In this document: positions 4,050 through 51,685 of the stretch, in pieces
How the letters are laid out: each line of letters begins with the position of its first letter
Numbering within the stretch: the stretch's first letter is position 1
Origin: Guillardia theta CCMP2712
Lineage: Eukaryota; Protista; Cryptophyta
Length of the DNA stretch: 64,000 bases
Assembly: GCF_000315625.1 (NCBI RefSeq)
Contig: NW_005434661.1
Span: 5,764 to 69,763, forward strand
Direction of reading: 5' to 3'
Position numbers and translations under genes: made by a program
The notes under the pieces: generated by a model
Told to the model about the DNA's origin: nothing
Database searches by the model: none
What the model saw: the letters and a program-made list of their open reading frames with translations, nothing else

Positions 4050-5365
4050 ATGGTGCCTGCATTGCTAAGCTTGTGCTGCTTCCTATCGCCTTCTCCCTTG
4101 CATGTTCGCAGAAGCTCTCCAGCTCAATATGACTCCTTTCTATCCCTCCGATCGTCGCGCCCCTGCTTTTCGCTCTCACCTGACTGCCTTCCAAGAACTT
4201 CGTTTATAAGTAGATATCGGGGGCTACGAACCCAAGGCAATGTAGCTTGTCAGGCGAAAGATGACGATCGGTTTGATGCATGGTTTGAGAGATCTGAGAA
4301 GAAAATGGAGCAAATAGAGGTATTTTCTGTCTTTCTGTCTTCTCCCGCCTCCTCTTCCCACGGAAACACATGAAACCTAATTTCGTGGGTGAAGAGAGCA
4401 TCGATCGCGGCCCCAGACTTTCTTTCGTCTCGATCTTTGAGCACATGGAGCTGCTGCTTGTGGAAAGTCGCGTACCTGTTCTCAGAAAATCTACAACAAG
4501 AACGGGTGATTGCTCCAGACCTGGCATTCGTGGCTAATCGAACCTTCGGTCAATCCAGTGAAATTATCCAGCCAAGCACCTTAAGTCTGAAGATTCCGAT
4601 CTCAAGTCACTTTCTTATATGAGATGGTAGGAGGCAGTAGCGTTGCACTTCTCTTCGCTTCGTCGTGGTGCCCTGCGTATGACAAGAGAGCTCCAATGCT
4701 ACACTCACCCACTCTGATCTGCAGATGCATACAGTTCCTGCCCTTGTTGCAGGCGTTTTTTTCAGCGCAAGTATGCAACTTATTGGCTGAATGCAATGCT
4801 AACTTAGTTGTAAATCAATATTTTATAGAACTCTGGAGAGCACAGCAAAGCTAAGGTGCATTTTTCTATGTAGATTGCGTCTAAACTGCGCGCAAGATAT
4901 CCATCATTTTTGTGAGCTCGGATTTCTCAGAGGAGGACGCAACCACCTTTTTCAAGTTTCAAGTTCATTTTGTTCTTTGTTCATTCTCAAACTTTGTCAG
5001 AAATGCTCACGGCGATTGGCTGATGCTTGACTACAAAAGCGCTCTTCGTTCCGAGCTGAAGCGAAAGTTCGGGTGCGTGCTTTTCAAGGAACTTTTCGGC
5101 CGGCTGATGATGGCATGCTGTAGAGTGTGGGCAGGAAAAGAGGCCTCGCAGTTTGGCACTTCCATAGCATCGTTCAAGTCGAGGAGAAGTGGAATCCCCG
5201 CGCTTGCAATTGTCGGATTAGACGGAGAGCTTGTCAACTTCTTGAACGCTGAGCTGGAAGGTTTCGAGGCTTTGATGTAAGTTTTCTGTGCAATCTGCTT
5301 GGATCTCATACTACAACAGACACTGGAATCCTGAATACTATGTCTGGCAGCAACTGAAACATTAA
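4050..5365 (+). CDS. nucleoredoxin/tryparedoxin-like thioredoxin, multi-exon
   Basis: Splicing GT(4677)...AG(4724) joins LLFASSWCPA to CIQFLPLL, giving a WCPAC active site; later IIFVSSD and SGIPALAIVGLDG motifs typical of nucleoredoxin-like domains. Confidence 0.7.
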
Positions 5366-35974: not shown

Positions 35975-36649
35975 GATTGGGGTAATAGGTAAGATTCGAA
36001 AATAGAGGTCGAACTAAACGTCGCAGTTTATGTTGTACGTTTTGCTTCCTTCAGAAATCCCTTTGAGTTGACTCGATCTCCCCGCGACGAAAATGTTGTT
36101 GTATGCACTGCGATATGTACAAGTATTGATATATGAAAGATCTTCTATCTTTGAAACCTCAACATCTCGACTGTGATAGGCGGAAGGTTGGTATTGACTT
36201 GACTTTCAAGGCTGTTACGAGACTTGTTTTGATTCAGCTTGCGGATGATTTTCCCTGCCGCACTCCCATGCTTCGACCTTTTGGCCATGGCGAACGTAGA
36301 AGCCTGAGACAGCAGCGCGTTTCTCAGGGTAGGATCTCTTTCTTTTCCTGGTAGGATCTAGCTTTCCATTTTGGTAGCAAAAATACCGGTACTATCACCT
36401 ACGCCAGTGTCACAGGATGGGGTCGGTGGTCTACCTGCCGCAGTCTATAATAGATAAACGCCACGAATCTATCTACCACGGGTACTCTCCCTCATGATGT
36501 GACATGATGTGACGGAATATGTGAATACCCTTCTGAACGACGAACTAAGTTTTCGCACAGAACTGCCGTCGTATGATTGAGAGCCGCGACTCTCCGTCAT
36601 ACAACGGCAGTTGTTTTTTTTTGCCAAATTGTCTTCGGATGTTGTTGGA

Positions 36650-36846
36650 GCCTTACATGAATCCTACCAAATGATGCCAGTCAGTCACTTCAATGATCAC
36701 ATGTCGTAAACATCGGATCATAATGGAGGCAGGCACCGGGCAGGCAGGCAGGCAGGGAATTAGGCATCGAGTCCCGAGGGACGCAGTCTGGGTAGGGAGG
36801 GGGCGACAACAATCATTGAATTCACCTCAGGGGCGACGTAGGTGAT
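36650..36846 (-). ncRNA. candidate Fanzor omegaRNA (scaffold ~36846/36826 to ~36672, putative guide ~36671 to ~36650)
   Basis: Directly downstream of the Fanzor stop; stems 36812-36820/36689-36697 and 36804-36808/36702-36706, hairpin 36771-36782, pseudoknot-compatible GAUGCC(36768-63)/GGCAUC(36678-73); boundaries are inferred. Confidence 0.55.
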
Positions 36847-37580
36847 TCGGTCTTTCAGGAAACACATTGAAACAAGTGAGTATATTCAGTGCAGCATTCA
36901 AGTCCCTGGATTTGATCGGCTTTCCTTTACAGCTGTCACGATAACAGTTAGATGAAAAGGTGAATTACAGGAGTATACAAAACTTGACATTACCTCGATG
37001 ATCTGCAAAATTTCAATCCTCGTACTTCACTTTTCCTTGTTTTCAACCTACAGGTCTCGTCTGGTTCTTTCCCTGTATTTTCAATCCGTCGAAGCACATC
37101 GAGCTCAGAACCACAATCGTTACAGCACTTGGTAGTACGGTATTCGTCAACATCTACGACTCTGTAGTGATTCTCGAATCTTCTTCTTATCCACCTGACC
37201 GGTACAGGCCTTTCTCCTCGACGTCCTGTAGACGGGAACCTTGCATTTCCATATGCGATAACAGGTTCTATTTCTCCCTTTCCTTTCATTGTACGGATAA
37301 ACCTGTCGACTGACTTTCGTTTCGAAATGTAGATGTCGAATTTCATCCTGGCGTATTTTCGCTTTGAATAATGCGAAGTTAACTCCTCCCAATGACTTGT
37401 AACTGCAAGAAGATAGTCTTCGAATCTTGATAGACTGCCGCCAGACTTACTCGAGAACCCCTTGAGATAGTGCAATGTCGATTGAATATCTTGATCCCAC
37501 GTCTTTCTTTTCTTTTTATTGCGATTCAGATGTGACTCGTGATAATATTGTTTTCTCGAAAACTGAAATCTTTTTCTGAT
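36827..37580 (-). CDS. Fanzor1 (TnpB-like RNA-guided endonuclease), C-terminal part with one intron; 5' part lost in N gap
   Basis: Open frame from the gap: FSRKQYYHESHLN...VIAYGNARF...RPVP...VDEYRTTKCCNDC...VRGLKFC; intron 36933-36993 (GT-AG); then SCKGKPIKSRDLNAALNI...RPNHLRRP*; contains RuvC-II Glu, zinc finger and RuvC-III Asp. Confidence 0.92.
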
Positions 37581-37681
37581 NNNNNNNNNNNNNNNNNNNN
37601 NNNNNNNNNNNNNNNNNNNNNNNNNNNNNNNNNNNNNNNNNNNNNNNNNNNNNNNNNNNNNNNNNNNNNNNNNNNNNNNNT

Positions 37682-38146
37682 AATGCTGCTAAGCATGCAA
37701 ATAATGATTACGATTTTGATATTCATATTTATGGCACTAAACTTGATACATTCCTTTATTCTTGTGAATGTGGTCTCCTTCTTACTCGACAGCTGCTTCA
37801 TATTCATCAAAAAACTACTAAACATTCTTTCACACCATGTCGTGACATCAAGGCTAAACCTTCACATGCGCATATCCCTAATCTCCATTTTGATCCAAAG
37901 GATCCACTCGTCTATGTTTATGATTCATTCATCTTTCAATGCCATTGTGGATTAATACTCAACACTCATTTAATGACTTTGCATCTTACAGTTTGTGATC
38001 ATGAATTCGATCTTCTTGATGACATCTATAAACACAAATCCGATGATCTTATTCCACAAGCGTGTATTGAATATGATGATAACTTATTTCAACAGTCTGA
38101 TACTCCTCTACAAAAACAATTCATTGATTTAGAAATCCTTGATTAA
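37682..38146 (+). CDS. virus-type zinc-finger protein, 5'-truncated by gap (absent from ORF track)
   Basis: Stop-free frame from the gap: ...YSCECGLLLTRQLLHIHQKTTKH...FQCHCGLILNTHLMTLHLTVCDH...LEILD*. Confidence 0.7.
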   Translation, partial: NAAKHANNDYDFDIHIYGTKLDTFLYSCECGLLLTRQLLHIHQKTTKHSFTPCRDIKAKPSHAHIPNLHFDPKDPLVYVYDSFIFQCHCGLILNTHLMTLHLTVCDHEFDLLDDIYKHKSDDLIPQACIEYDDNLFQQSDTPLQKQFIDLEILD

Positions 38147-39551
38147 TAATTTCATACTTTTTTTATATTTTTTTGTCCAATTATATGACTCTGTACGTAA
38201 AAACGATGATTCCTGCGTACAATACAACAATAAATCTATTACACTACTAAAATTAAAATATATTCCTATTGCAGTACAATGCTAATAATATCCAAATTAA
38301 AACACTTGAAAACACAATGACAAAATTTCTATTAAGATTATGTTCAATAAATATTAATTACCCATACAATAAATATTATTTCAATTAAAATAATATCCAA
38401 TAAATATTAATTGCCTTATCAATGTAAATTAATGCTGCAGCGCGGTGCATAAATTGCACAATGTAAAACGGCGGTATAGCATGAGCAAAGCGAATGCTAT
38501 GATGAGCGCGCAGTGCTCATCTATTCCATTGCAACTTGTGCTACACTTGTTATTCCTATTACACTCGCAAACCCTTGATTACAAGTATTCAGTCGTCCTG
38601 AACTGTATAATGGAGCGTATCATAACACAGAAATAACAGAATAAACAGCGGTAACGCACGTAAGTGCGTGGGCCGAAGGCCTATCCCTGTTGAAACATGC
38701 TAACCATATATATTTCTTGATGATTTTGTGATTATTTTTCTTTTAAGTTAAATCTGAAATTTAGTAGTGTTAATATATATTTGTTAATTATACATTCCTC
38801 GACGGCGAGTGTCTTGCAATGATTCGATAAAAACCGCAGCAGTGCAATGCTAAAATTTAAAAGACCTCCATGAAATCAATCTGCTGGTACCAAATGGTTA
38901 AATCCATACCTTTAAACACAGACATAAATCCTTTAGTAAAAAATATAAAATCAAATTTGTATCAGATTTAAACTGTGTTCTCGTAACATTTACAGATTAC
39001 AATCGCATTTTCATGACTGGACGCTCAGCTTGCCGTAGGCAACAGAATTGCAATGAAACCACAAGCTTATTCTCTTATAATCTTGCAATTCCGTTGCAAT
39101 TTTGTCCAGTTTAGCTCCTTTTGTCAAAAGGAGCAAATAAAAGCAACATAGAGCTACTCGTAGCCACATAAAACCCCAAGCTTTTACATATATTTTTTCA
39201 TATATCATTGGGCGACAACAATTAAATGGTTTAATTGTTTTTTCATTTCTTAATATATATGCCAACATCATGCTTTTTAATTGATTACATTCATTCTCTT
39301 TTTTTATTTTTATGCACTATACTGCTGATAATTATTGTACAATATTCAATATACTAACGAGCGTACCCACGGAGTGGCTTGAGCAAACATATTATATATT
39401 TGTTTTCCTATTGATTATATCAGCGCTCCCTATTTTTTGCATGCAAAACATAGAGGAGCAGCTTCGCTGGAAGCAGCCTTGGTCGCTTGCACTCGAAGAG
39501 CTGCGCCAACCTTTTGAATGTGTTAATGAACTCTTGATTATAACAAAAATA

Positions 39552-40195
39552 AATTAGGACAAGAATTTTCATATTTCTGAAATTTTGCAAAATTGAAAAA
39601 TAAATTTTCAACTTGAGAAAAATATTTTCCTGATTTTACATTTTTTCCAGAAATTCAAAATTCTTGTCCTAATTCAATCATTATCTTAGATCATACACTA
39701 TAGTACATATATATCTAATGTTATATGTGATGTACATGATCTATGTATGTGCATTGGAACTCTTGATATCAAAAATAAATTAGGACAAGAATTTTCAAAT
39801 TTCAGAAATTTTGCAAAATTGAAAAATAAATTTTCAACTTGAGAAAAATATTTTCCTGATTTTACATTTTTTTTTGAAATTCTAAATTCTTGTCCTAATT
39901 CAATCATTATCTTAGATCATACACTATAGTACATATGTGCTATATACTATATACTATATACTATATACTATATACTATATATTGTGTATATGATGTATGT
40001 ATGTATGTATGTATGTATGTATGTATGTATGTATGTATGTATGTGCTATTGAACTCTTGATAATGTCAAAAATAAATTAGGACAAGAATTTTCAAATTTC
40101 AGAAATTTTGCAAAACTGGAAAATAAATTTTCAACTTGATAAAATATTTTCCTGATTTTACATATTTTTCAGAAATTCTAAATTCTTGTCCTAAT
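39552..40195. repeat. array A: three ~120-bp palindromic units with 18-bp arms AATTAGGACAAGAATTTT
   Basis: Units at 39552-39674, ~39778-39900 and ~40075-40195, separated by related spacers with TATAC/TGTA microsatellites. Confidence 0.9.
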
Positions 40196-41102
40196 CTTAA
40201 TTATTATCTAAGATCATACACTATAGTACATATGTACTATATACTATATACTATATACTATATACTATATATTGTGTTATAATGTATGTATGTGNNNNNN
40301 NNNNNNNNNNNNNNNNNNNNNNNNNNNNNNNNNNNNNNNNNNNNNNNNNNNNNNNNNNNNNNNNNNNNNNNNNNNNNNNNNNNNNNNNNNNNNNNNNNNN
40401 NNNNNNNNNNNNNNNNNNNNNNNNNNNNNNNNNNNNNNNNNNNNNNNNNNNNNNNNNNNNNNNNNNNNNNNNNNNNNNNNNNNNNNNNNNNNNNNNNNNN
40501 NNNNNNNNNNNNNNNNNNNNNNNNNNNNNNNNNNNNNNNNNNNNNNNNNNNNNNNNNNNNNNNNNNNNNNNNNNNNNNNNNNNNNNNNNNNNNNNNNNNN
40601 NNNNNNNNNNNNNNNNNNNNNNNNNNNNNNNNNNNNNNNNNNNNNNNNNNNNNNNNNNNNNNNNNNNNNNNNNNNNNNNNNNNNNNNNNNNNNNNNNNNN
40701 NNNNNNNNNNNNNNNNNNNNNNNNNNNNNNNNNNNNNTCACATACACCGTAGTACATATATACTATATAGTATATAGTATATAGTATATAGGAAGAGATA
40801 TGCAGTTGTCTATGTAAGTACTATGTATTGTGTATATGATGCATGTATGTGATAATTGAACTCTTGATAATATCGAAGTGTCCTAATCTTAATTATTGGT
40901 TCACTATAGTACATATATATTAAATGTCACATGTGATAAGGCAAAATTATATCAAATCTATATTAAAAAAACTATATTTGTAATCATTTGTTTTGTCTCT
41001 TTNNNNNNNNNNNNNNNNNNNNNNNNNNNNNNNNNNNNNNNNNNNNNNNNNNNNNNNNNNNNNNNNNNNNNNNNNNNNNNNNNNNNNNNNNNNNNNNNNN
41101 NN

Positions 41103-41746
41103 AATCATAACACTCATCTCTATATGCTAAACATAAATTATGATTATCACATTTTTGAAAATATTGATACATATGATAAGAGTATCCTATGTCATTCAAT
41201 TCATATATTAAAGATAAATCTTTTGATGCTTGCATAACACCAAATGTTTTCGGATATGCATTCATTGAATAATCATCTATACTGAACATAGATACTATAT
41301 CATATATTACATTATCTATTACATATGAATTATTGCAATAAGGGCAATTATGTATATTAAAATCATATGATTTCAATATGCATGATTTATGGAACTTGTG
41401 GCCACATCCTAATATCAGTGAATTCTTTGGGGAAACAAAACCATTATAGGCGCAGCCAAGGCTGCTTCGCGGCCGCACAGATGGAACACTCATCCATGTA
41501 TGGGTTGATATATGTCACCTTCTTAAGAAGCTTGTCAATAAAGTATTGTTTTTTCTTTTTCCTTTTACTTGATAATGGTGATGGGGATGGTGTATCATAT
41601 GAATTATATACCACTGATTTTTTTGAATATAGGTATCCACGTACTATATTCTGGCAATAATAACATTCACCACAGTCACATATTTCCTGAGAATGATCTG
41701 ATGATAGATTGTCTGTTATTATATCTTCTAATGTCAATGATTTCAT
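41103..41746 (-). pseudogene. RING-finger protein frameshifted by a 28-bp insertion
   Basis: Removing 41449-41476 fuses the two ORFs into ...DECSICYNGFVSPKNSLILGCGHKFHKSCILKSYDFNIHNCPYCN (RING-H2 spacing). Confidence 0.8.
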
Positions 41747-41902
41747 TTGAGATTCGTTTCATATATTCGTTTCATTTTTAACACTATGAAACAATATATC
41801 CTAGATCATGACCATGTGACACTGTGCTTTTGCAAGAGACTATGTATAGAATATATGTATAGACATCTGATATATATTGTTCCTGTTGTGCTATATGGTA
41901 TA

Positions 41903-42572
41903 TTTAGGACGCTTCGCTTGCCGGAGGCAACAAGAATTTTGATTTTTAGAAAAAAATGTAAAATCCGGAAAATAAATTTTCAACTTGAGAAAAATATTTT
42001 CCAGTTTTGCAAATTTTCACAGATTTCTAAATTCTTGTCCTAATTTATATTTTTGTACATATGGCAACTATTTATCATGTTTAATTCTTGATCATCACTA
42101 TATACATGTCTATGTATAGAACATCTGATCTATATTGTTACTGTTGTGCTATATGGTATATTTAGGACAAGAATTTTGATTTTTAGAAAAAAATGTAAAA
42201 TCAGGAAAATATTTTTCTCAAGTTGAAAATTTATTTTCCAGTTTTGCAAATTTTCACAGATTTCTAAATTCTTGTCCTAATTTATATTTTTGTACATATG
42301 GCAACTATTTATCATGGTTAGATTCTTTATCATTACTATGGTGCTTGAGACTAGAGGCTACATACATAGACATACATAGACATACATATACATGTATAGA
42401 CATACATAGAATATCTGATCTATATTGTTACTATTATGCTATATGATATATTTAGGACAAGAATTTTGATTTTTAGAAAAAAATGTAAAATCCGGAAAAT
42501 ATTTTTCTCAAGTTGAAAATTTATTTTCCAGTTTTGCAAATTTTCACAGATTTCTAAATTCTTGTCCTAATT
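41903..42572. repeat. array B: three ~120-bp palindromic units in opposite orientation to array A
   Basis: Units ~41903-42044, 42161-42282 and 42451-42572 match the reverse complement of the array A units. Confidence 0.9.
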
Positions 42573-42680
42573 TATATTTTTGTACATATGGCAACTATTT
42601 ATCATGGTTAGATTCTTTATCATTACTGTGGTGCTTGAGACTAGAGGCTACATACTTTATATTGATTTTTTATTAAGATC

Positions 42681-43616
42681 ATGGAAAATCCTGCCACCTT
42701 CCAATTTAAATCTAATCTGCTCAAGGCGTCAAAGAGCAATGATTTCAAGGATGCCGTTGCCTACGGCAAGCGGAGCGTCAATGAATGGCGCATCATCAAA
42801 AACAAGATGATCAATGATGATCCAAACAAGACATACAAATGCATATGTCAGAGGAAAATCCAATACATTTCATTCATCTATAACATAGAAACGAAATTAA
42901 CAATATTGGTTGGATCTACATGTTTGAAGAAATTCAAGATCAACAAAAACCACAACCAAGACAATCCCTATACAAAAATCATCATATCCAAACTGACCAA
43001 AGGAGAGTATGAGATCATAGACGACATAATAGAATATAGTGATGACGTTGAGAAAGAATTGCAAAATTATTATGAGACTATAATCACCAACATTCTAACC
43101 AATCCTAGATTGAGCACTGAAGATGTTCATGATGGTCTATCTACTATCATTGAAGAGATTCTGTTCTTGAAGAATGAATACGGATTGTCATATCTAGATT
43201 CAATTCTTAATGAAGTTAAGGAATCAATTAAAAGAATTGATTTGCAATTAGAGAGAGAGATTGAAACTAGATTAAGACTGCAGAAAATAGATGAAGAACA
43301 ACTTATTCAACGATTGAAGAAAGAGGAAGAAGCAAGAAAATCCAAAGAGATTAATGACTTTAAAGATAGAATTAACAACATTAATTATTCTACAAGTCAT
43401 ATTCTTCAATCTTTAGAAAATATGCTACAAGAGATGCAAGGTAAATCATACTTAGAACACATCTCAATCAGAGTGAATAAGTTGATCAGAAGATGTCCTG
43501 CTTCTACTATCGCAAGGGGGACAGAACCCTCATATTTCAAGAAGAAGAGTTTATCAAAATCAATTAGTTTTTTTATTAGTTTTTATTACTTTTTTTCTTC
43601 CGCCCTCTCTTTCTAG
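42681..43616 (+). CDS. virus-like hypothetical protein with N-terminal Cys motif and coiled-coil tail
   Basis: 311-aa intron-less ORF; EW...CICQRKI...IYN..T..TILVGSTCLKKF, a pattern I associate with large DNA virus/phage ORFs. Confidence 0.65.
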   Translation: MENPATFQFKSNLLKASKSNDFKDAVAYGKRSVNEWRIIKNKMINDDPNKTYKCICQRKIQYISFIYNIETKLTILVGSTCLKKFKINKNHNQDNPYTKIIISKLTKGEYEIIDDIIEYSDDVEKELQNYYETIITNILTNPRLSTEDVHDGLSTIIEEILFLKNEYGLSYLDSILNEVKESIKRIDLQLEREIETRLRLQKIDEEQLIQRLKKEEEARKSKEINDFKDRINNINYSTSHILQSLENMLQEMQGKSYLEHISIRVNKLIRRCPASTIARGTEPSYFKKKSLSKSISFFISFYYFFSSALSF

Positions 43617-44528
43617 CATGGAATCACACAAAATTAATCTGGGATTAATTCCTTTAATTTTTGAATATTTTTTCTTCAACTCATAAAACAATTTATCAAA
43701 CTCTTCATTTAATTTAACAAAATTAATTGGATTTTCTTTATTATTAGATGTTTTCTCATCATCATTGTAACCACTAAAACTTGGCACAAAATAATCAATA
43801 TGTGGTTTAATCATGACAACTTCTATGTGCAGTTTAGTCAAGTTTAAACTATTCCATTTTTCGATAATTTTAACAGTTTTTTCTTTGGAGTCAGTGTGTA
43901 TAGAAAATTCTAATGTATCATATTTTTTTAATTCCCAATGTTCATTTTCATTGTCATAGTCCTTTCCATCTTTAAAAGAATATGGAAAAGCGTTTGTAAG
44001 TCTAAAAACACATGTGTCTTCATTTAAATTTAAATTAAAATCATTTAAATTTAATTTATAAATCTTGTCAACCAAAAAACAATCTTGACCATCAGAATAC
44101 TTAACCTTGACTAAACATGTGATATTTCGCTTTTGATCTTCTTGTAAATATTTTAATTGTTTATATTCATAAAACGCGTTTTCTTGTTCTTTTATTTGAT
44201 TTTCATCATATTGATTTGTAATTTTAATGTCAGGCAATGATTTCAGAGATTTTGGTATAGAAGGATCTGCTACATCATCAGGATTTGCTATATCATCAGG
44301 ATCTGCTACATCACATGTTTTGCCTGTACAAAAAATTCTTGATAAAAAACCACCTCCTGCTTTCTTAATATTAGAAAGCGGGATGAATTCATTTTTTAAT
44401 TTGATATATTTTTTGTTTTTCTTTGTATAAATAATCTTGCCATTGTATTTAGCTTCCGTTTTTATATAATCACTATGTTTATTAGTTTGTTTTTTATGTT
44501 TTGCAACAGGCACAATCAATCTATTCAT
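43560..44528 (-). CDS. virus-like hypothetical protein
   Basis: 322-aa intron-less N/K-rich ORF; KYIKLKN...GGG motif recalls giant-virus low-complexity families. Confidence 0.6.
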   Translation of the reverse strand: MNRLIVPVAKHKKQTNKHSDYIKTEAKYNGKIIYTKKNKKYIKLKNEFIPLSNIKKAGGGFLSRIFCTGKTCDVADPDDIANPDDVADPSIPKSLKSLPDIKITNQYDENQIKEQENAFYEYKQLKYLQEDQKRNITCLVKVKYSDGQDCFLVDKIYKLNLNDFNLNLNEDTCVFRLTNAFPYSFKDGKDYDNENEHWELKKYDTLEFSIHTDSKEKTVKIIEKWNSLNLTKLHIEVVMIKPHIDYFVPSFSGYNDDEKTSNNKENPINFVKLNEEFDKLFYELKKKYSKIKGINPRLILCDSMLEREGGRKKVIKTNKKTN

Positions 44529-45374
44529 ATTTATTTACAATATTACAATATTATAAAATTATATTACAATTAATTTTATAAGCTTCCAGCAAATTAAGTT
44601 TGTCAGATTGCATTTAAAATCAAATCTTTATCTTTAATCGGCGCTTTGCTTAATGAAGCCAACAAAACGTTTTTCTTGTAAATTATAAATTTCCAAAATA
44701 TAAGAATTGATTCTTCAGAGAAGAATCCAATCCTTTTGTAGTTTAAAATGCGTTAGTTTTATCCAATATGTATTGTTGTAGAAGTCTTGTTCCATCTCTT
44801 TATAAATGCAATACACTTATTTTCGTAGATATTTGAATATATCCATCTCTAATTTCTACATAGACTAGAAGAATTAGATCTAAAATCAAAGAATATATCA
44901 AAAATGCCATAGAAATTAATGATCCAGAACTTATTGTTAGGGTCCCGCTCTATATTCATTTTTTCTTTCCAAGAAAACAAATTCAAAAAGAAGCAATTCA
45001 AGATATCTGCCGTCGTTTCGGAACCCCCCAGATGAGAAGAAGATGAACGAAAAGAAAAGGAATAAGAAATATGAATCCGAAAGACATAGACTTGAAGCAT
45101 TAGACTGATTCCGTGATATTAGAATAGGGGGTTCCGAGCTTGCGCAGGCTTGGCTTTAGCCATCCGAAGCGATGAAATCGCTAAGGCTTGGGCCTTGCCC
45201 AACCGCCCCCCTCCGACGGTCAGTTACTCAAGTTGTATCATGGTGATATTGATGGTTTCACTATTGAATTACAACCTTCTCTTGAAACCTATCAAGAAAT
45301 CTTGACTAAATATGATCTATGGAAGAAGGATTTTCCATCCTACCTTTGATATTTCTAAATTAATTATTTTTTAC

Positions 45375-45560
45375 ATTGATATCGCAATTGATTTGCATGG
45401 ATATTGCATGATACTGCATGGATATTGCATGATACTGCATGAATTTGCATCGATATTGCAATTGTAAGCATTGATTTCGCATGGTTGTGCATGGATTTGC
45501 AAAGATATTGCAATTGTAAGCATTGATTTCGCATGGACTTGCAAAGATAGCGCAATTGAT
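45375..45560. repeat. degenerate ~11-bp GATATTGCATK tandem repeats
   Basis: Direct reading; same family as 46170-46425. Confidence 0.8.
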
Positions 45561-45606
45561 ATGCTTTTGTTAGGCATGTTTAAGAATAAAAAATACCACA
45601 GATAAT

Positions 45607-46116
45607 TTATTTATCATTGTTTGATGAATTTTTCAAAGCATGCTCCAACTCCAATATCTGAATGATTTTAATGATTTGCATGATTATATGCACCGTTCCG
45701 TAACCAGTAAAATTAAACACAACCGAATCCTCAACCTCATCACCGTTATGATAATGATAATAACTGAACTTCCGTGCATCATACTCCTCCTTAGTCATCA
45801 AGTGGCAATACATATGCCCCTCATACGAACTGAGAACTGCATCGTAGTTTTTGAACAAAGGCCTGAACAACCCCAATATGTGCAAGTTGTTGTGTTCAGC
45901 TTCGGAATCAAGATCGGCATGAAAATCGAATCGCAAATGGTACGGCCGGTCTGTATGGCATTTGCATGGGTCTTTATCTTCGATAACAGGAAACTCAGTC
46001 TGTCCAAGAGTTCTCCTCACTAGATTTTCTAGTTGAGTGTCATAATATGATTTAGAAGTATCATATAACGATTTCTCAATACATTTCTTTCGCTCTGCAT
46101 CCAATATAGATTGCAT
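45607..46116 (-). CDS. hypothetical protein (island)
   Basis: 169-aa ATG-initiated intron-less ORF with protein-like composition, flanked by repeat arrays. Confidence 0.6.
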   Translation of the reverse strand: MQSILDAERKKCIEKSLYDTSKSYYDTQLENLVRRTLGQTEFPVIEDKDPCKCHTDRPYHLRFDFHADLDSEAEHNNLHILGLFRPLFKNYDAVLSSYEGHMYCHLMTKEEYDARKFSYYHYHNGDEVEDSVVFNFTGYGTVHIIMQIIKIIQILELEHALKNSSNNDK

Positions 46117-46169
46117 GTTTTTGCTTTCTATTGATTGAACTGATTGATATCATTTTTTCGAATAGTTGT

Positions 46170-46425
46170 GCATTTTATATTGCATGGTTGTGCATTGATA
46201 TTGCATTAATATTGTATTAATATTGCATTAATATTGCATAGTTGTGCATTGATTGTGCAAAGATATTGCAATTGTAAGCATTGATATTGCATTAGTATTG
46301 CATTGATATTGCATGGTTCTGCATGGATATTGCAATAGTAAGCATTGATATTGCATTGATATTGCATGGTTGTGCATGGATTTGCAAAGATATTGCAATT
46401 TTAAGCATTAATATTGCATGGATTC
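46170..46425. repeat. degenerate ~11-bp GATATTGCATT tandem repeats
   Basis: Direct reading; shares GCAAAGATATTGCAATTGTAAGCATTGAT with 45499-45527. Confidence 0.8.
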
Positions 46426-46532
46426 ACATAGATATAGCATAGATATAGCATATATAGCAACAGTGAGCATAGATATAATATTGGAAAGAGATATTTAGTA
46501 TAAACAAAAATTGTATAGATAATATAGATAGA

Positions 46533-46814
46533 ATGTCTGACACAGCAGCTGTTGATACAGTTATTGATCCTAAAATCTTGAAAAGAAGAGAATATCAAAG
46601 ACAATATTACAAGAAGAAATATCAAGAAGACCCCGAATACAGGAAGAAGAGAGATCAGATCAACAAAGATTACAAAAATTCAAGATATCAATATGATGAG
46701 GAATATAGGGAGAAACAGAAGGAAATCAAACGAGATAAATTAAGGAAGAAATACAATGAGGATGAAGAATACAGATTGAAGAAGATAGCGGATGTATATC
46801 TTAGAAAGATATGA
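46533..46814 (+). CDS. small charged (K/R/E/Y) virus-like protein
   Basis: 93 aa with three Y..D.EYR repeats. Confidence 0.6.
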   Translation: MSDTAAVDTVIDPKILKRREYQRQYYKKKYQEDPEYRKKRDQINKDYKNSRYQYDEEYREKQKEIKRDKLRKKYNEDEEYRLKKIADVYLRKI

Positions 46815-46885
46815 AAAGGATATAAGGAAATTTATATAGATATATCTAGTTACGAGGAAGAAAAAGATCCAAGGAAAGAGACACA

Positions 46886-47235
46886 ATGAAATCGGATTAT
46901 GAGACAGATGTTTCAATGGAGTCAAATGAAACATATAAGACAGATGATACAGTATGTTGCATTTCGGTTCCGAAAAGTAATTTTGATGTGATAAAATACT
47001 TTGGATCGAGAGAGTTGCAAGGGATGAGGTTCTATGAGAATTTTGATAAGAAAGCATTGCAAAATGTGTTCCAAAACTTTGAAAAGTATGAATCAGAGAT
47101 AAGGAAGAACAATGAACAGGAAGATTGGAATCCGAAGGGATTCATGCTGAATTATTTGAAGCATTCAGGATCGAACGATTACTGTTTGATAAGTTATTCA
47201 AAGGCAAAGAAAGCGCCTCAATTCAATGAAAATAA
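46886..47235 (+). pseudogene. 5' fragment of a viral replication-type gene (possible PolA-like primase-helicase N-terminus), interrupted
   Basis: FYENFDKKALQNVF...LNYLKHSG...ISYSK pattern; base composition changes abruptly at ~47235 while the frame runs on into unrelated DNA. Confidence 0.35.
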
Positions 47236-51020: not shown

Positions 51021-51685
51021 GGTTGATGCGCGCGCGATTGGTGAATACAAGAAATTCAAATTAAATTCGCGTTGTAAGCTCGCGGTACATCAAATTGGCC
51101 TCTGGTACAAATTATTCATCGTACATTAAATTGCCTCTGGTACAACAATTTCATGGTACATTAATTCGAAAAGCTCTCGTTTCAATAGTCGGTGGAAATG
51201 CAATTGTGGGTGTATTCCACCAACTTTTGAATTTGCAATTCTGGGTCCGAGGTCCCATATTTGATTTACTCAATTTTTTGATGTACCAGCATTCCACCTG
51301 TAATTGGCGTACCGAACACGCCTACTGGTACCGGTGTTGCTCAGCCCCCACTACCCCCATGTCTTGTTTCTGGTAGGATCTCGTCTTGGGGAGCTTCGGA
51401 GTAGGTCTGCCACTGACTCCCGTCTAGCTTCACCCCCGTTATTCTAGCTAGAGTAACCTCGGATATTCTCAACGCCCTGCAAGGCATCCAGGGCTGTCAG
51501 GTGTGCCTCCTCCCTCCCCAGACTCAGCCCTGACTCATGTTCGGAGATCAAATTGAGAGTCACTTTCAAACGAGAAACTATACATTTACATTCGGCTGAT
51601 CTAGATATCAGTTATACACATTAGGTCAAGTTCATAGAATCCAGCGCAAGGAAGGAGACCGGAGGTATCACTTTGCTGCGCTGAT

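Follow-up and report, generated by a model that had tools for sequence, protein, structure and literature searches.

The DNA between positions 36448 and 37580 of a 64,000-nt stretch of the Guillardia theta genome (strain CCMP2712; contig 13, 5764-69763; hereafter the window) is very probably the 3′-terminal 1.13 kb of a single copy of a non-autonomous G. theta element of 2.73 kb, the sole gene of which encodes a Fanzor1 protein of 666 amino acids. A preliminary description of this DNA had proposed a Fanzor1 gene with a RuvC-III exon hidden by a genuine spliceosomal intron, and both parts of that proposal are upheld by the genomic copies, the homologous genes and the RNA data described below. 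The parts of the window copy are as follows.

37581-37680, no strand: assembly gap of 100 N that interrupts the window copy
36994-37580, minus strand: 3′ portion of exon 1 of the Fanzor1 gene, covering residues 437-631 (of 666) and the first 2 nt of codon 632; RuvC-II (E582 in VDEYRTTK) and Cys 1-3 of the TNB zinc finger lie here
36933-36993, minus strand: GT..AG intron of 61 nt, phase 2, separating the last two zinc-finger Cys
36827-36932, minus strand: exon 2, with the last zinc-finger Cys, RuvC-III SRDLNAALNIL (D642), the C-terminus and the stop codon TGA (36829-36827)
36664-36825, minus strand: second sense GT..AG intron, in the 3′ UTR, 162 nt in the window and 166 nt in copy C87
36448-36663, minus strand: structured 3′ tail of the element, candidate omegaRNA scaffold and putative right-end signal
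36447-36450, minus strand: TTAT at the right boundary, a possible target-site or TAM-like tetranucleotide
36427-36446, minus strand: host DNA past the right end, which from its position and by analogy with TnpB/Fanzor loci (PMC10432273) would be the native guide source if the tail is an omegaRNA
37265-37332, plus strand: antisense GT..AG intron of 68 nt within exon 1, from an RNA joint, with the dinucleotides read in the sequence
36876-36932, plus strand: antisense GT..AG intron of 57 nt within exon 2, from an RNA joint

The minus-strand frame is open from the gap edge at 37580 to 36996, giving 195 codons that read IRKRFQFSRKQYYHES...VDEYRTTKCCNDCGSEL...GLKFCRSS, and the reading continues to 36994, where the intron interrupts a codon (intron GT at 36993-36992, AG at 36934-36933). 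Exon 2 completes that codon, AG|C for serine, and continues as CKGKPIKSRDLNAALNILTCFNVFPERPNHLRRP to the stop (34 codons); the second sense intron begins 1 nt past the stop codon, with its GT at 36825 and its AG at 36665-36664 as read in the sequence. The open frame reaching the gap, the 61-nt GT-AG intron at 36993-36933 with its downstream exon, and the motifs VDEYRTTK, CxxC...CxxxxC and RDLNAALNI after joining had all been pointed out earlier and are all present as described, with the four zinc-finger Cys complete after splicing. The visible part was likewise correctly reported as free of stops and frameshifts: its coding portion shows 0 base differences from the intact sister copy C87.

Searching the genome (87.1 Mb, 669 contigs) with the 195-aa fragment gave 45 matches, including 8 other copies at 100% identity, 5 at 96-99% and two older copies at 77-86%, together with two further families of Fanzor1 genes, both intron-less. 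The second family (L015-L023, L025), with about 10 copies that are 96-99% identical and contain open frames of 642 aa, matches the window family at 48%, and the third (L027, L028) at 40-41%, both over the C-terminal third of the protein. At least 13 copies of the element are 97-100% identical and lie in unrelated flanks, and further copies occur in other flanks on environmental contigs. Alignment of 8-kb stretches around 12 near-identical copies delimits an element of ~2,730 nt with sharp common ends (left end CCTTTAATCGAC..., right end ...GGCGTTTATCTA), and the right boundary is common to 13 copies; the window holds the 3′ 1,133 nt (37580 to 36448), and with them 35% of the gene. TTAA or TTAT abuts each element end, and the left and right tetranucleotides are the same in 9 of the 10 copies readable at both ends (TTAT/TTAT in three of them; Fisher p about 0.03 for left-right agreement), which suggests, on a purely statistical footing, a 4-bp target duplication.

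No empty site was found with the 3′ flank of copy C29, which occurs only at two filled sites, or with the flanks of the environmental copy L047, which matched a repeat at window positions 51323-51501 and the filled C30 and C29 sites. That repeat (minus strand) is 97% identical to the 5′ flank of L047, the likeness ending 11 nt before the element, and seems to mark where a different repeat family ends, with Fanzor copies (also C98) nearby. Terminal inverted repeats and a second gene were looked for in the element and neither was found, Fanzor being its only ORF; the 121-nt left end occurs only in Fanzor copies. The element is thus a young multi-copy family that encodes no transposase, is bounded by TTAA/TTAT and has no inverted ends. 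As for a piggyBac-type cut-and-paste element, neither the terminal inverted repeats nor the transposase ORF of that type were found in the element; the TTAA or TTAT flanks may reflect a TTAA target duplication. Separately, the piggyBac transposase family PF13843 scores above its cut-off at no fewer than 10 loci in the genome (including C1:917360-918118, C21:234111-235178, C181:11687-12760 and C13:194785-195441), some with open frames of 670-800 aa, and these loci are candidate mobilisers of TTAA-flanked elements.

Most full-extent copies are broken. Exon 1 is intact in 4 of 12 (C87, C29, C111 and C23), one lacks its ATG through a 168-nt deletion, and the other seven are frameshifted, deleted or, in C99, interrupted by an assembly gap. 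Distinct substitutions among the copies, counted with a misaligned stretch beside a gap left out, number 9 synonymous, 19 non-synonymous and 1 stop, a pattern near that of neutral decay once a copy has inserted; variants common to several copies are few and mostly synonymous. In the broken copies C57, C40, C30 and C244 (L032, L041, L042 and L037), the frameshifts are mostly 2-4-nt GC-rich non-templated insertions (CACG, CCAT, CTGC, GCCG, GCCA and others; five in C57), which look like repair or excision footprints.

Because the gap removes everything upstream of residue 437, the window copy itself may be either complete or 5′-truncated. If it is complete, at least 1,595 nt of the element are missing from the window, namely the 5′ UTR and residues 1-436; RuvC-I had been placed in this missing part, and its aspartate D417 indeed falls 20 residues upstream of the gap edge. 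We regard it as possible, though on balance unlikely, that the window copy is a complete, intact and expressed nuclease gene with its 5′ 1.6 kb in the gap. Its visible 1,133 nt differ from C87 by one substitution in the 3′ tail and one 4-nt indel in intron 2, the latter a difference from C87 common to all other copies, and 12 of about 13 copies holding the window region span the whole element. Moreover, the 100 N are a placeholder and not a measured size, as indicated by a 100-N gap in copy C99 that stands for a 41-nt hole and by the extension of contig C467 described next. Against an intact copy, the frame is intact in only the 4 of 12 full-extent copies named above, truncated copies exist, no read is traceable to the window copy, and C467 points to 1 kb or more of AT-rich DNA other than Fanzor next to the gap edge. 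This 5.8-kb contig (L052, 2355-5782) is 99.8% identical to window positions 37681-38565 and extends on the gap side by a further 1,043 nt of Fanzor-free DNA with a GC content of 29%; it represents either the second haplotype, which would put more than 1 kb inside the gap, or a paralogous copy of the island beyond the gap. As a possible haplotig it could help to close the gap. No window sequence beyond the gap matches the element, and no public gene product matched the ORF beside the gap. The window copy lies at the border of a 9-10-kb AT-rich island directly past the gap (37681-47235, 20-32% GC), in which Pfam gave no match for seven larger ORFs and a RING finger for one (40987-41493, minus strand); parts of the island are repeated on C467, C374, C483, C35, C75 and C180.

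The complete gene can be read in copy C87 (L004/L034), where an ATG lies 287 nt into the element and a 632-codon exon 1, the same 61-nt intron and exon 2 yield the 666-aa product. Its N-terminus, MPRKRKR, is a classical basic nuclear-localisation-type motif, and RVIAIDPGR (D417), VDEYRTT (E582) and SRDLNAALNIL (D642) supply the RuvC D...E...D triad, of which E582 and D642 are in the window and D417 is present in the full-length sisters, the gap having removed it from the window copy. These three columns are invariant or at least 90% conserved (94-95 relatives aligned), with D nearly invariant at the D642 column of the 95-sequence family alignment.

Assignment of the window gene to Fanzor1 was made through its sister copies. 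Using phmmer, the sister ORF matched SpuFz1 (8GKH, E 9e-7) along the stretch extending from RuvC-I through the zinc finger, and a 95-member family profile matched, over nearly the whole profile, SpuFz1 (7e-40) and PpFz1 (8e-34), as well as GtFz1 (5e-73, partly by construction because GtFz1 is in the profile). An exhaustive profile search with an E limit of 1e-3 recovered 7,470 cluster representatives; a word-indexed protein search returned 3 matches only. In Pfam, PF07282 (Cas12f1-like_TNB / OrfB_Zn_ribbon; cut-off 26.3 bits) was the only domain in all 10 relatives tested, the intron-less ones scoring 21-34 bits, with 4 of the 10 above the cut-off; GtFz1 scores 23.4 bits. Because the intron takes away the end of the domain, neither the window fragment, at 17.1 bits (E 0.006), nor the exon-1 ORF of the sister, at 14.8 bits, reaches the cut-off. 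AlphaFold models of the C87 exon-1 ORF (pLDDT 85, pTM 0.86) and of an intron-less family-2 paralog (pLDDT 92, pTM 0.90) both returned solved Fanzor1 chains as their seven best Foldseek matches (E 1e-15 to 5e-21, TM 0.50-0.73; SpuFz1 0.62-0.73, PpFz1 about 0.6, GtFz1 about 0.5), with Cas12f/h, Fanzor2 and TnpB ranking far below. These fold tests concern sister C87 and family 2, the window copy being without WED, REC and RuvC-I. The profile or structural match to TnpB/Fanzor that the preliminary description had named as a check was thus obtained with the sister ORF and the family models, the window exon pieces scoring below threshold in Pfam, and from sequence and predicted structure the window gene is a Fanzor1.

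The 61-nt interruption is a real spliceosomal intron; it splits the TNB zinc finger and leaves the RuvC-III aspartate in the second exon. Aligned with an intron-less family-2 paralog (56% identity, E 2e-12), exon 1 ends at paralog residue 607 and exon 2 picks up at residue 609, with the split codon supplying residue 608, so that nothing is lost or gained at the join; the genes of families 2 and 3 run uninterrupted through this position. RNA across 36932/36994 had been suggested as a check, and a spliced joint was found in a single contig of run X1 (depth 7.2, shorter side 28 nt), which bears the exact GT..AG joint (5072-5132 of L034, the C87 locus). The joined 33-mer, as an intron-less DNA form would carry it, was not found in the genome with 2 mismatches allowed, and in the stranded raw-read run X17 zero reads lie over the 61-nt intron. 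The intron and its splice sites also persist in older copies that are 91% and about 81% identical in nucleotide sequence; these copies carry a 5-nt indel within the intron, a change that a coding region would not tolerate.

That the 61 nt are instead a disabling insertion, leaving a pseudogene that ends at TAA (36991-36989), is in our view highly improbable: the open-reading-frame track does have a stop there, and public gene callers give a 632-aa unspliced product (P0001), but the insertion would have to carry canonical GT..AG ends, restore frame and homology exactly, yield a spliced RNA contig and keep its splice sites whole in copies as diverged as about 80% identity while tolerating a 5-nt indel. 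Introns have already been reported in Fanzor genes, including the characterised Chlamydomonas Fanzor1c (PMC10530073). One environmental relative shows a break of another kind: on contig L044 (1968-2028; relative P0003, 25% identical) the frame is broken by 61 nt that contain two perfect hairpins and have no GT..AG ends, about five codons upstream of the G. theta intron position, and the RuvC-III motif follows in another frame.

Introns and a nuclear localisation signal are host-gene-like features, and with them the gene might be read as a single domesticated host gene and not as a transposon passenger. This is scarcely credible, because the gene has at least 13 near-identical copies, many of them frameshifted, that share sharp boundaries and lie in unrelated flanks, and yet more copies occur in other flanks on environmental contigs; we keep to a gene carried by a multi-copy element.

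G. theta also encodes GtFz1, reportedly among the four Fanzors first shown to cut DNA, with an unusual D-E-N site and no editing of human cells. Whether the window gene was that locus or a paralog had been left open. GtFz1 is GUITHDRAFT_101477 on scaffold 7 (contig 7, published coordinates), with the N-terminus MSNIRIVKRK, and the data file of the Nature paper lists two G. theta loci, on scaffolds 7 and 348. It is not among the 45 genomic matches to the window fragment; it shares about 22% identity with the intron-less sister family over 320 residues of the C-terminal half (E 8e-6) and matches the family-1 exon-1 ORF over 51 residues only (35%, E 2e-6). The two have in common the genome, the Fanzor1 fold (PDB 9CER-9CET; TM 0.50-0.53), loci without inverted repeats or transposase, and the tetranucleotide, the GtFz1 TAM, TTAAN, matching the flanks of the new family (PMC10432273, PMC11423790). 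They differ in the third catalytic residue, N658 in GtFz1 (PMC11423790) where the new family has D642, in the intron, which GtFz1 does not have there, and in the 3′ RNA region, which is unrelated in sequence. The chance that the window gene represents the published locus of GtFz1 or a closely similar copy, as the shared organism, protein class and TTAA-type flank (PMC10432273) might suggest, is virtually nil given the different scaffold, the ~22% identity, the missing intron and the D in place of N. On these comparisons we regard it as settled that the window gene is a distant paralog.

For transcription, reads and contigs of four runs (X1, X2, X3 and X17) were mapped on copy C87. Only X17 is on record as RNA; X1-X3 hold RNA as well, as follows from their canonical splice joints. 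Sense GT..AG joints span the 61-nt intron in X1 and the 166-nt intron (5240-5405 of L034) in X1 and X2. Joints of the opposite polarity (CT..AC) define four canonical antisense introns: one of 68 nt (4733-4800 of L034), found in all four runs and better supported than the sense intron; one of 57 nt (5133-5189 of L034), in X1 and X3; and two of 65 nt and 238 nt (L034:4312-4376 and 4428-4665) that lie partly or wholly in the part absent from the window. In the stranded run X17, all raw gene-body reads point in one direction, the same as that of its two CT..AC-joint reads, and for this reason we take them as antisense RNA, under a strand rule that is uncalibrated. A 1,252-nt contig of X1 that spans the initial 1.25 kb of the coding region has letters found only in C23, so that an intact copy is transcribed on one strand or the other; across the four runs no read was assignable to the window copy.

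The family is therefore transcribed on both strands and produces spliced sense mRNA at low depth. The earlier description of the gene as host-expressed is weakly supported, the sense splicing being of low depth in unstranded contigs and the antisense splicing better supported; nor is its wording as a host-expressed, active nuclease supported as it stood for a transposon family in which most full-extent copies are broken and the window copy is cut by the gap. Outside the window, in the 3′ flank of C87, ~44 nt (L034:5638-5681) reach depths in the thousands in contigs of the RNA runs, where a wide variety of sequences adjoin them at either side; this is a short transcribed repeat of very high abundance.

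The 3′ tail of the element is strongly structured. Its last 216 nt (36663-36448) fold with a minimum free energy of -70.3 kcal/mol (z -4.9 against shuffles), and the 161-nt family-2 tail gives z -3.9. In an alignment from which two wrongly oriented rows were left out, the last ~55 nt are nearly unchanged in the old copy at 91% identity while the sequence upstream has decayed, and one of the two changes replaces a U.G pair of the terminal hairpin by C-G. The tails of families 1 and 2 are alike only in their terminal 20 nt (16/20), the family-2 3′ region showing no match to exon 3 or intron 2 beyond them, and an Rfam search of the tail returned nothing relevant. Taken together with its position, the tail at 36448-36663 is a candidate omegaRNA scaffold. 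It also holds a 10-nt tandem duplication (TCACATCATG twice, 36489-36508) that is full in C87, partial in C30 and absent from the other genomic copies, and so marks a sub-lineage.

By analogy with SpuFz1, GtFz1 and TnpB (PMC10432273, PMC11423790), the protein would associate with a transcript of the element's structured final ~200 nt, whose 3′ extension, derived from the flanking DNA, would direct cutting to sites adjacent to TTAA/TTAT. The TTAA/TTAT at the element ends resembles the GtFz1 TAM (TTAAN) and would fit a nuclease that recognises the restored empty site. For the new family, omegaRNA, TAM and RNA-guided cleavage are thus plausible by likeness to known systems. We consider it very unlikely that, beyond this, the family still moves today, the spliceosome matures its guide RNA into a spliced omegaRNA, and the antisense spliced transcripts act as a brake imposed by the host or by the element itself. 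On such a view, removal of the 162-166-nt intron would join the end of the coding region to the terminal scaffold; homology cannot tell whether the second intron interrupts the scaffold, since family 2 shares only the last 20 nt.

Among prokaryotic relatives, TnpB proteins have about 400 aa, without the REC expansion, introns or nuclear localisation signal; their guide RNA comes from the right end of the element, and their TAM is the insertion-site motif. The TnpB of IS200/IS605 (ISDra2; PDB 8H1J) shares with the new family the ancestral RuvC and zinc-finger core (PF07282), but its Foldseek TM to the G. theta models is 0.21-0.34. The best match in both sequence and structure is SpuFz1 of Spizellomyces punctatus (PDB 8GKH, 9CEU-9CEZ; TM 0.62-0.73 over about 600 residues), a multi-copy transposon passenger of about 640-670 aa with the same D-E-D RuvC triad and TNB zinc finger. 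Identity to it is only 16-17%, and SpuFz1 elements have inverted repeats and a CATA TAM (PMC10432273), unlike the new family with its TTAA/TTAT flanks and no inverted ends. The Chlamydomonas reinhardtii Fanzor1c, CrFNuc (Jiang et al. 2023, PMC10530073), is similar in having spliceosomal introns and several copies per algal genome. Its guide RNA derives from the 3′ UTR, and it is carried by Helitron2 with asymmetric inverted repeats (PMC10530073); the G. theta element shows neither such ends nor a Helitron protein.

These data offer a clean, datable example of an intron retained in a transposon-borne gene alongside intron-less sister families. Surveys based on open reading frames or gene callers list this protein as 632 aa, without its RuvC-III residue. 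With four intact copies, a canonical D-E-D site, an N-terminal nuclear localisation signal and TTAA/TTAT flanks, this second G. theta family provides a natural comparison with GtFz1 and, judged from its sequence, an additional candidate nuclease.
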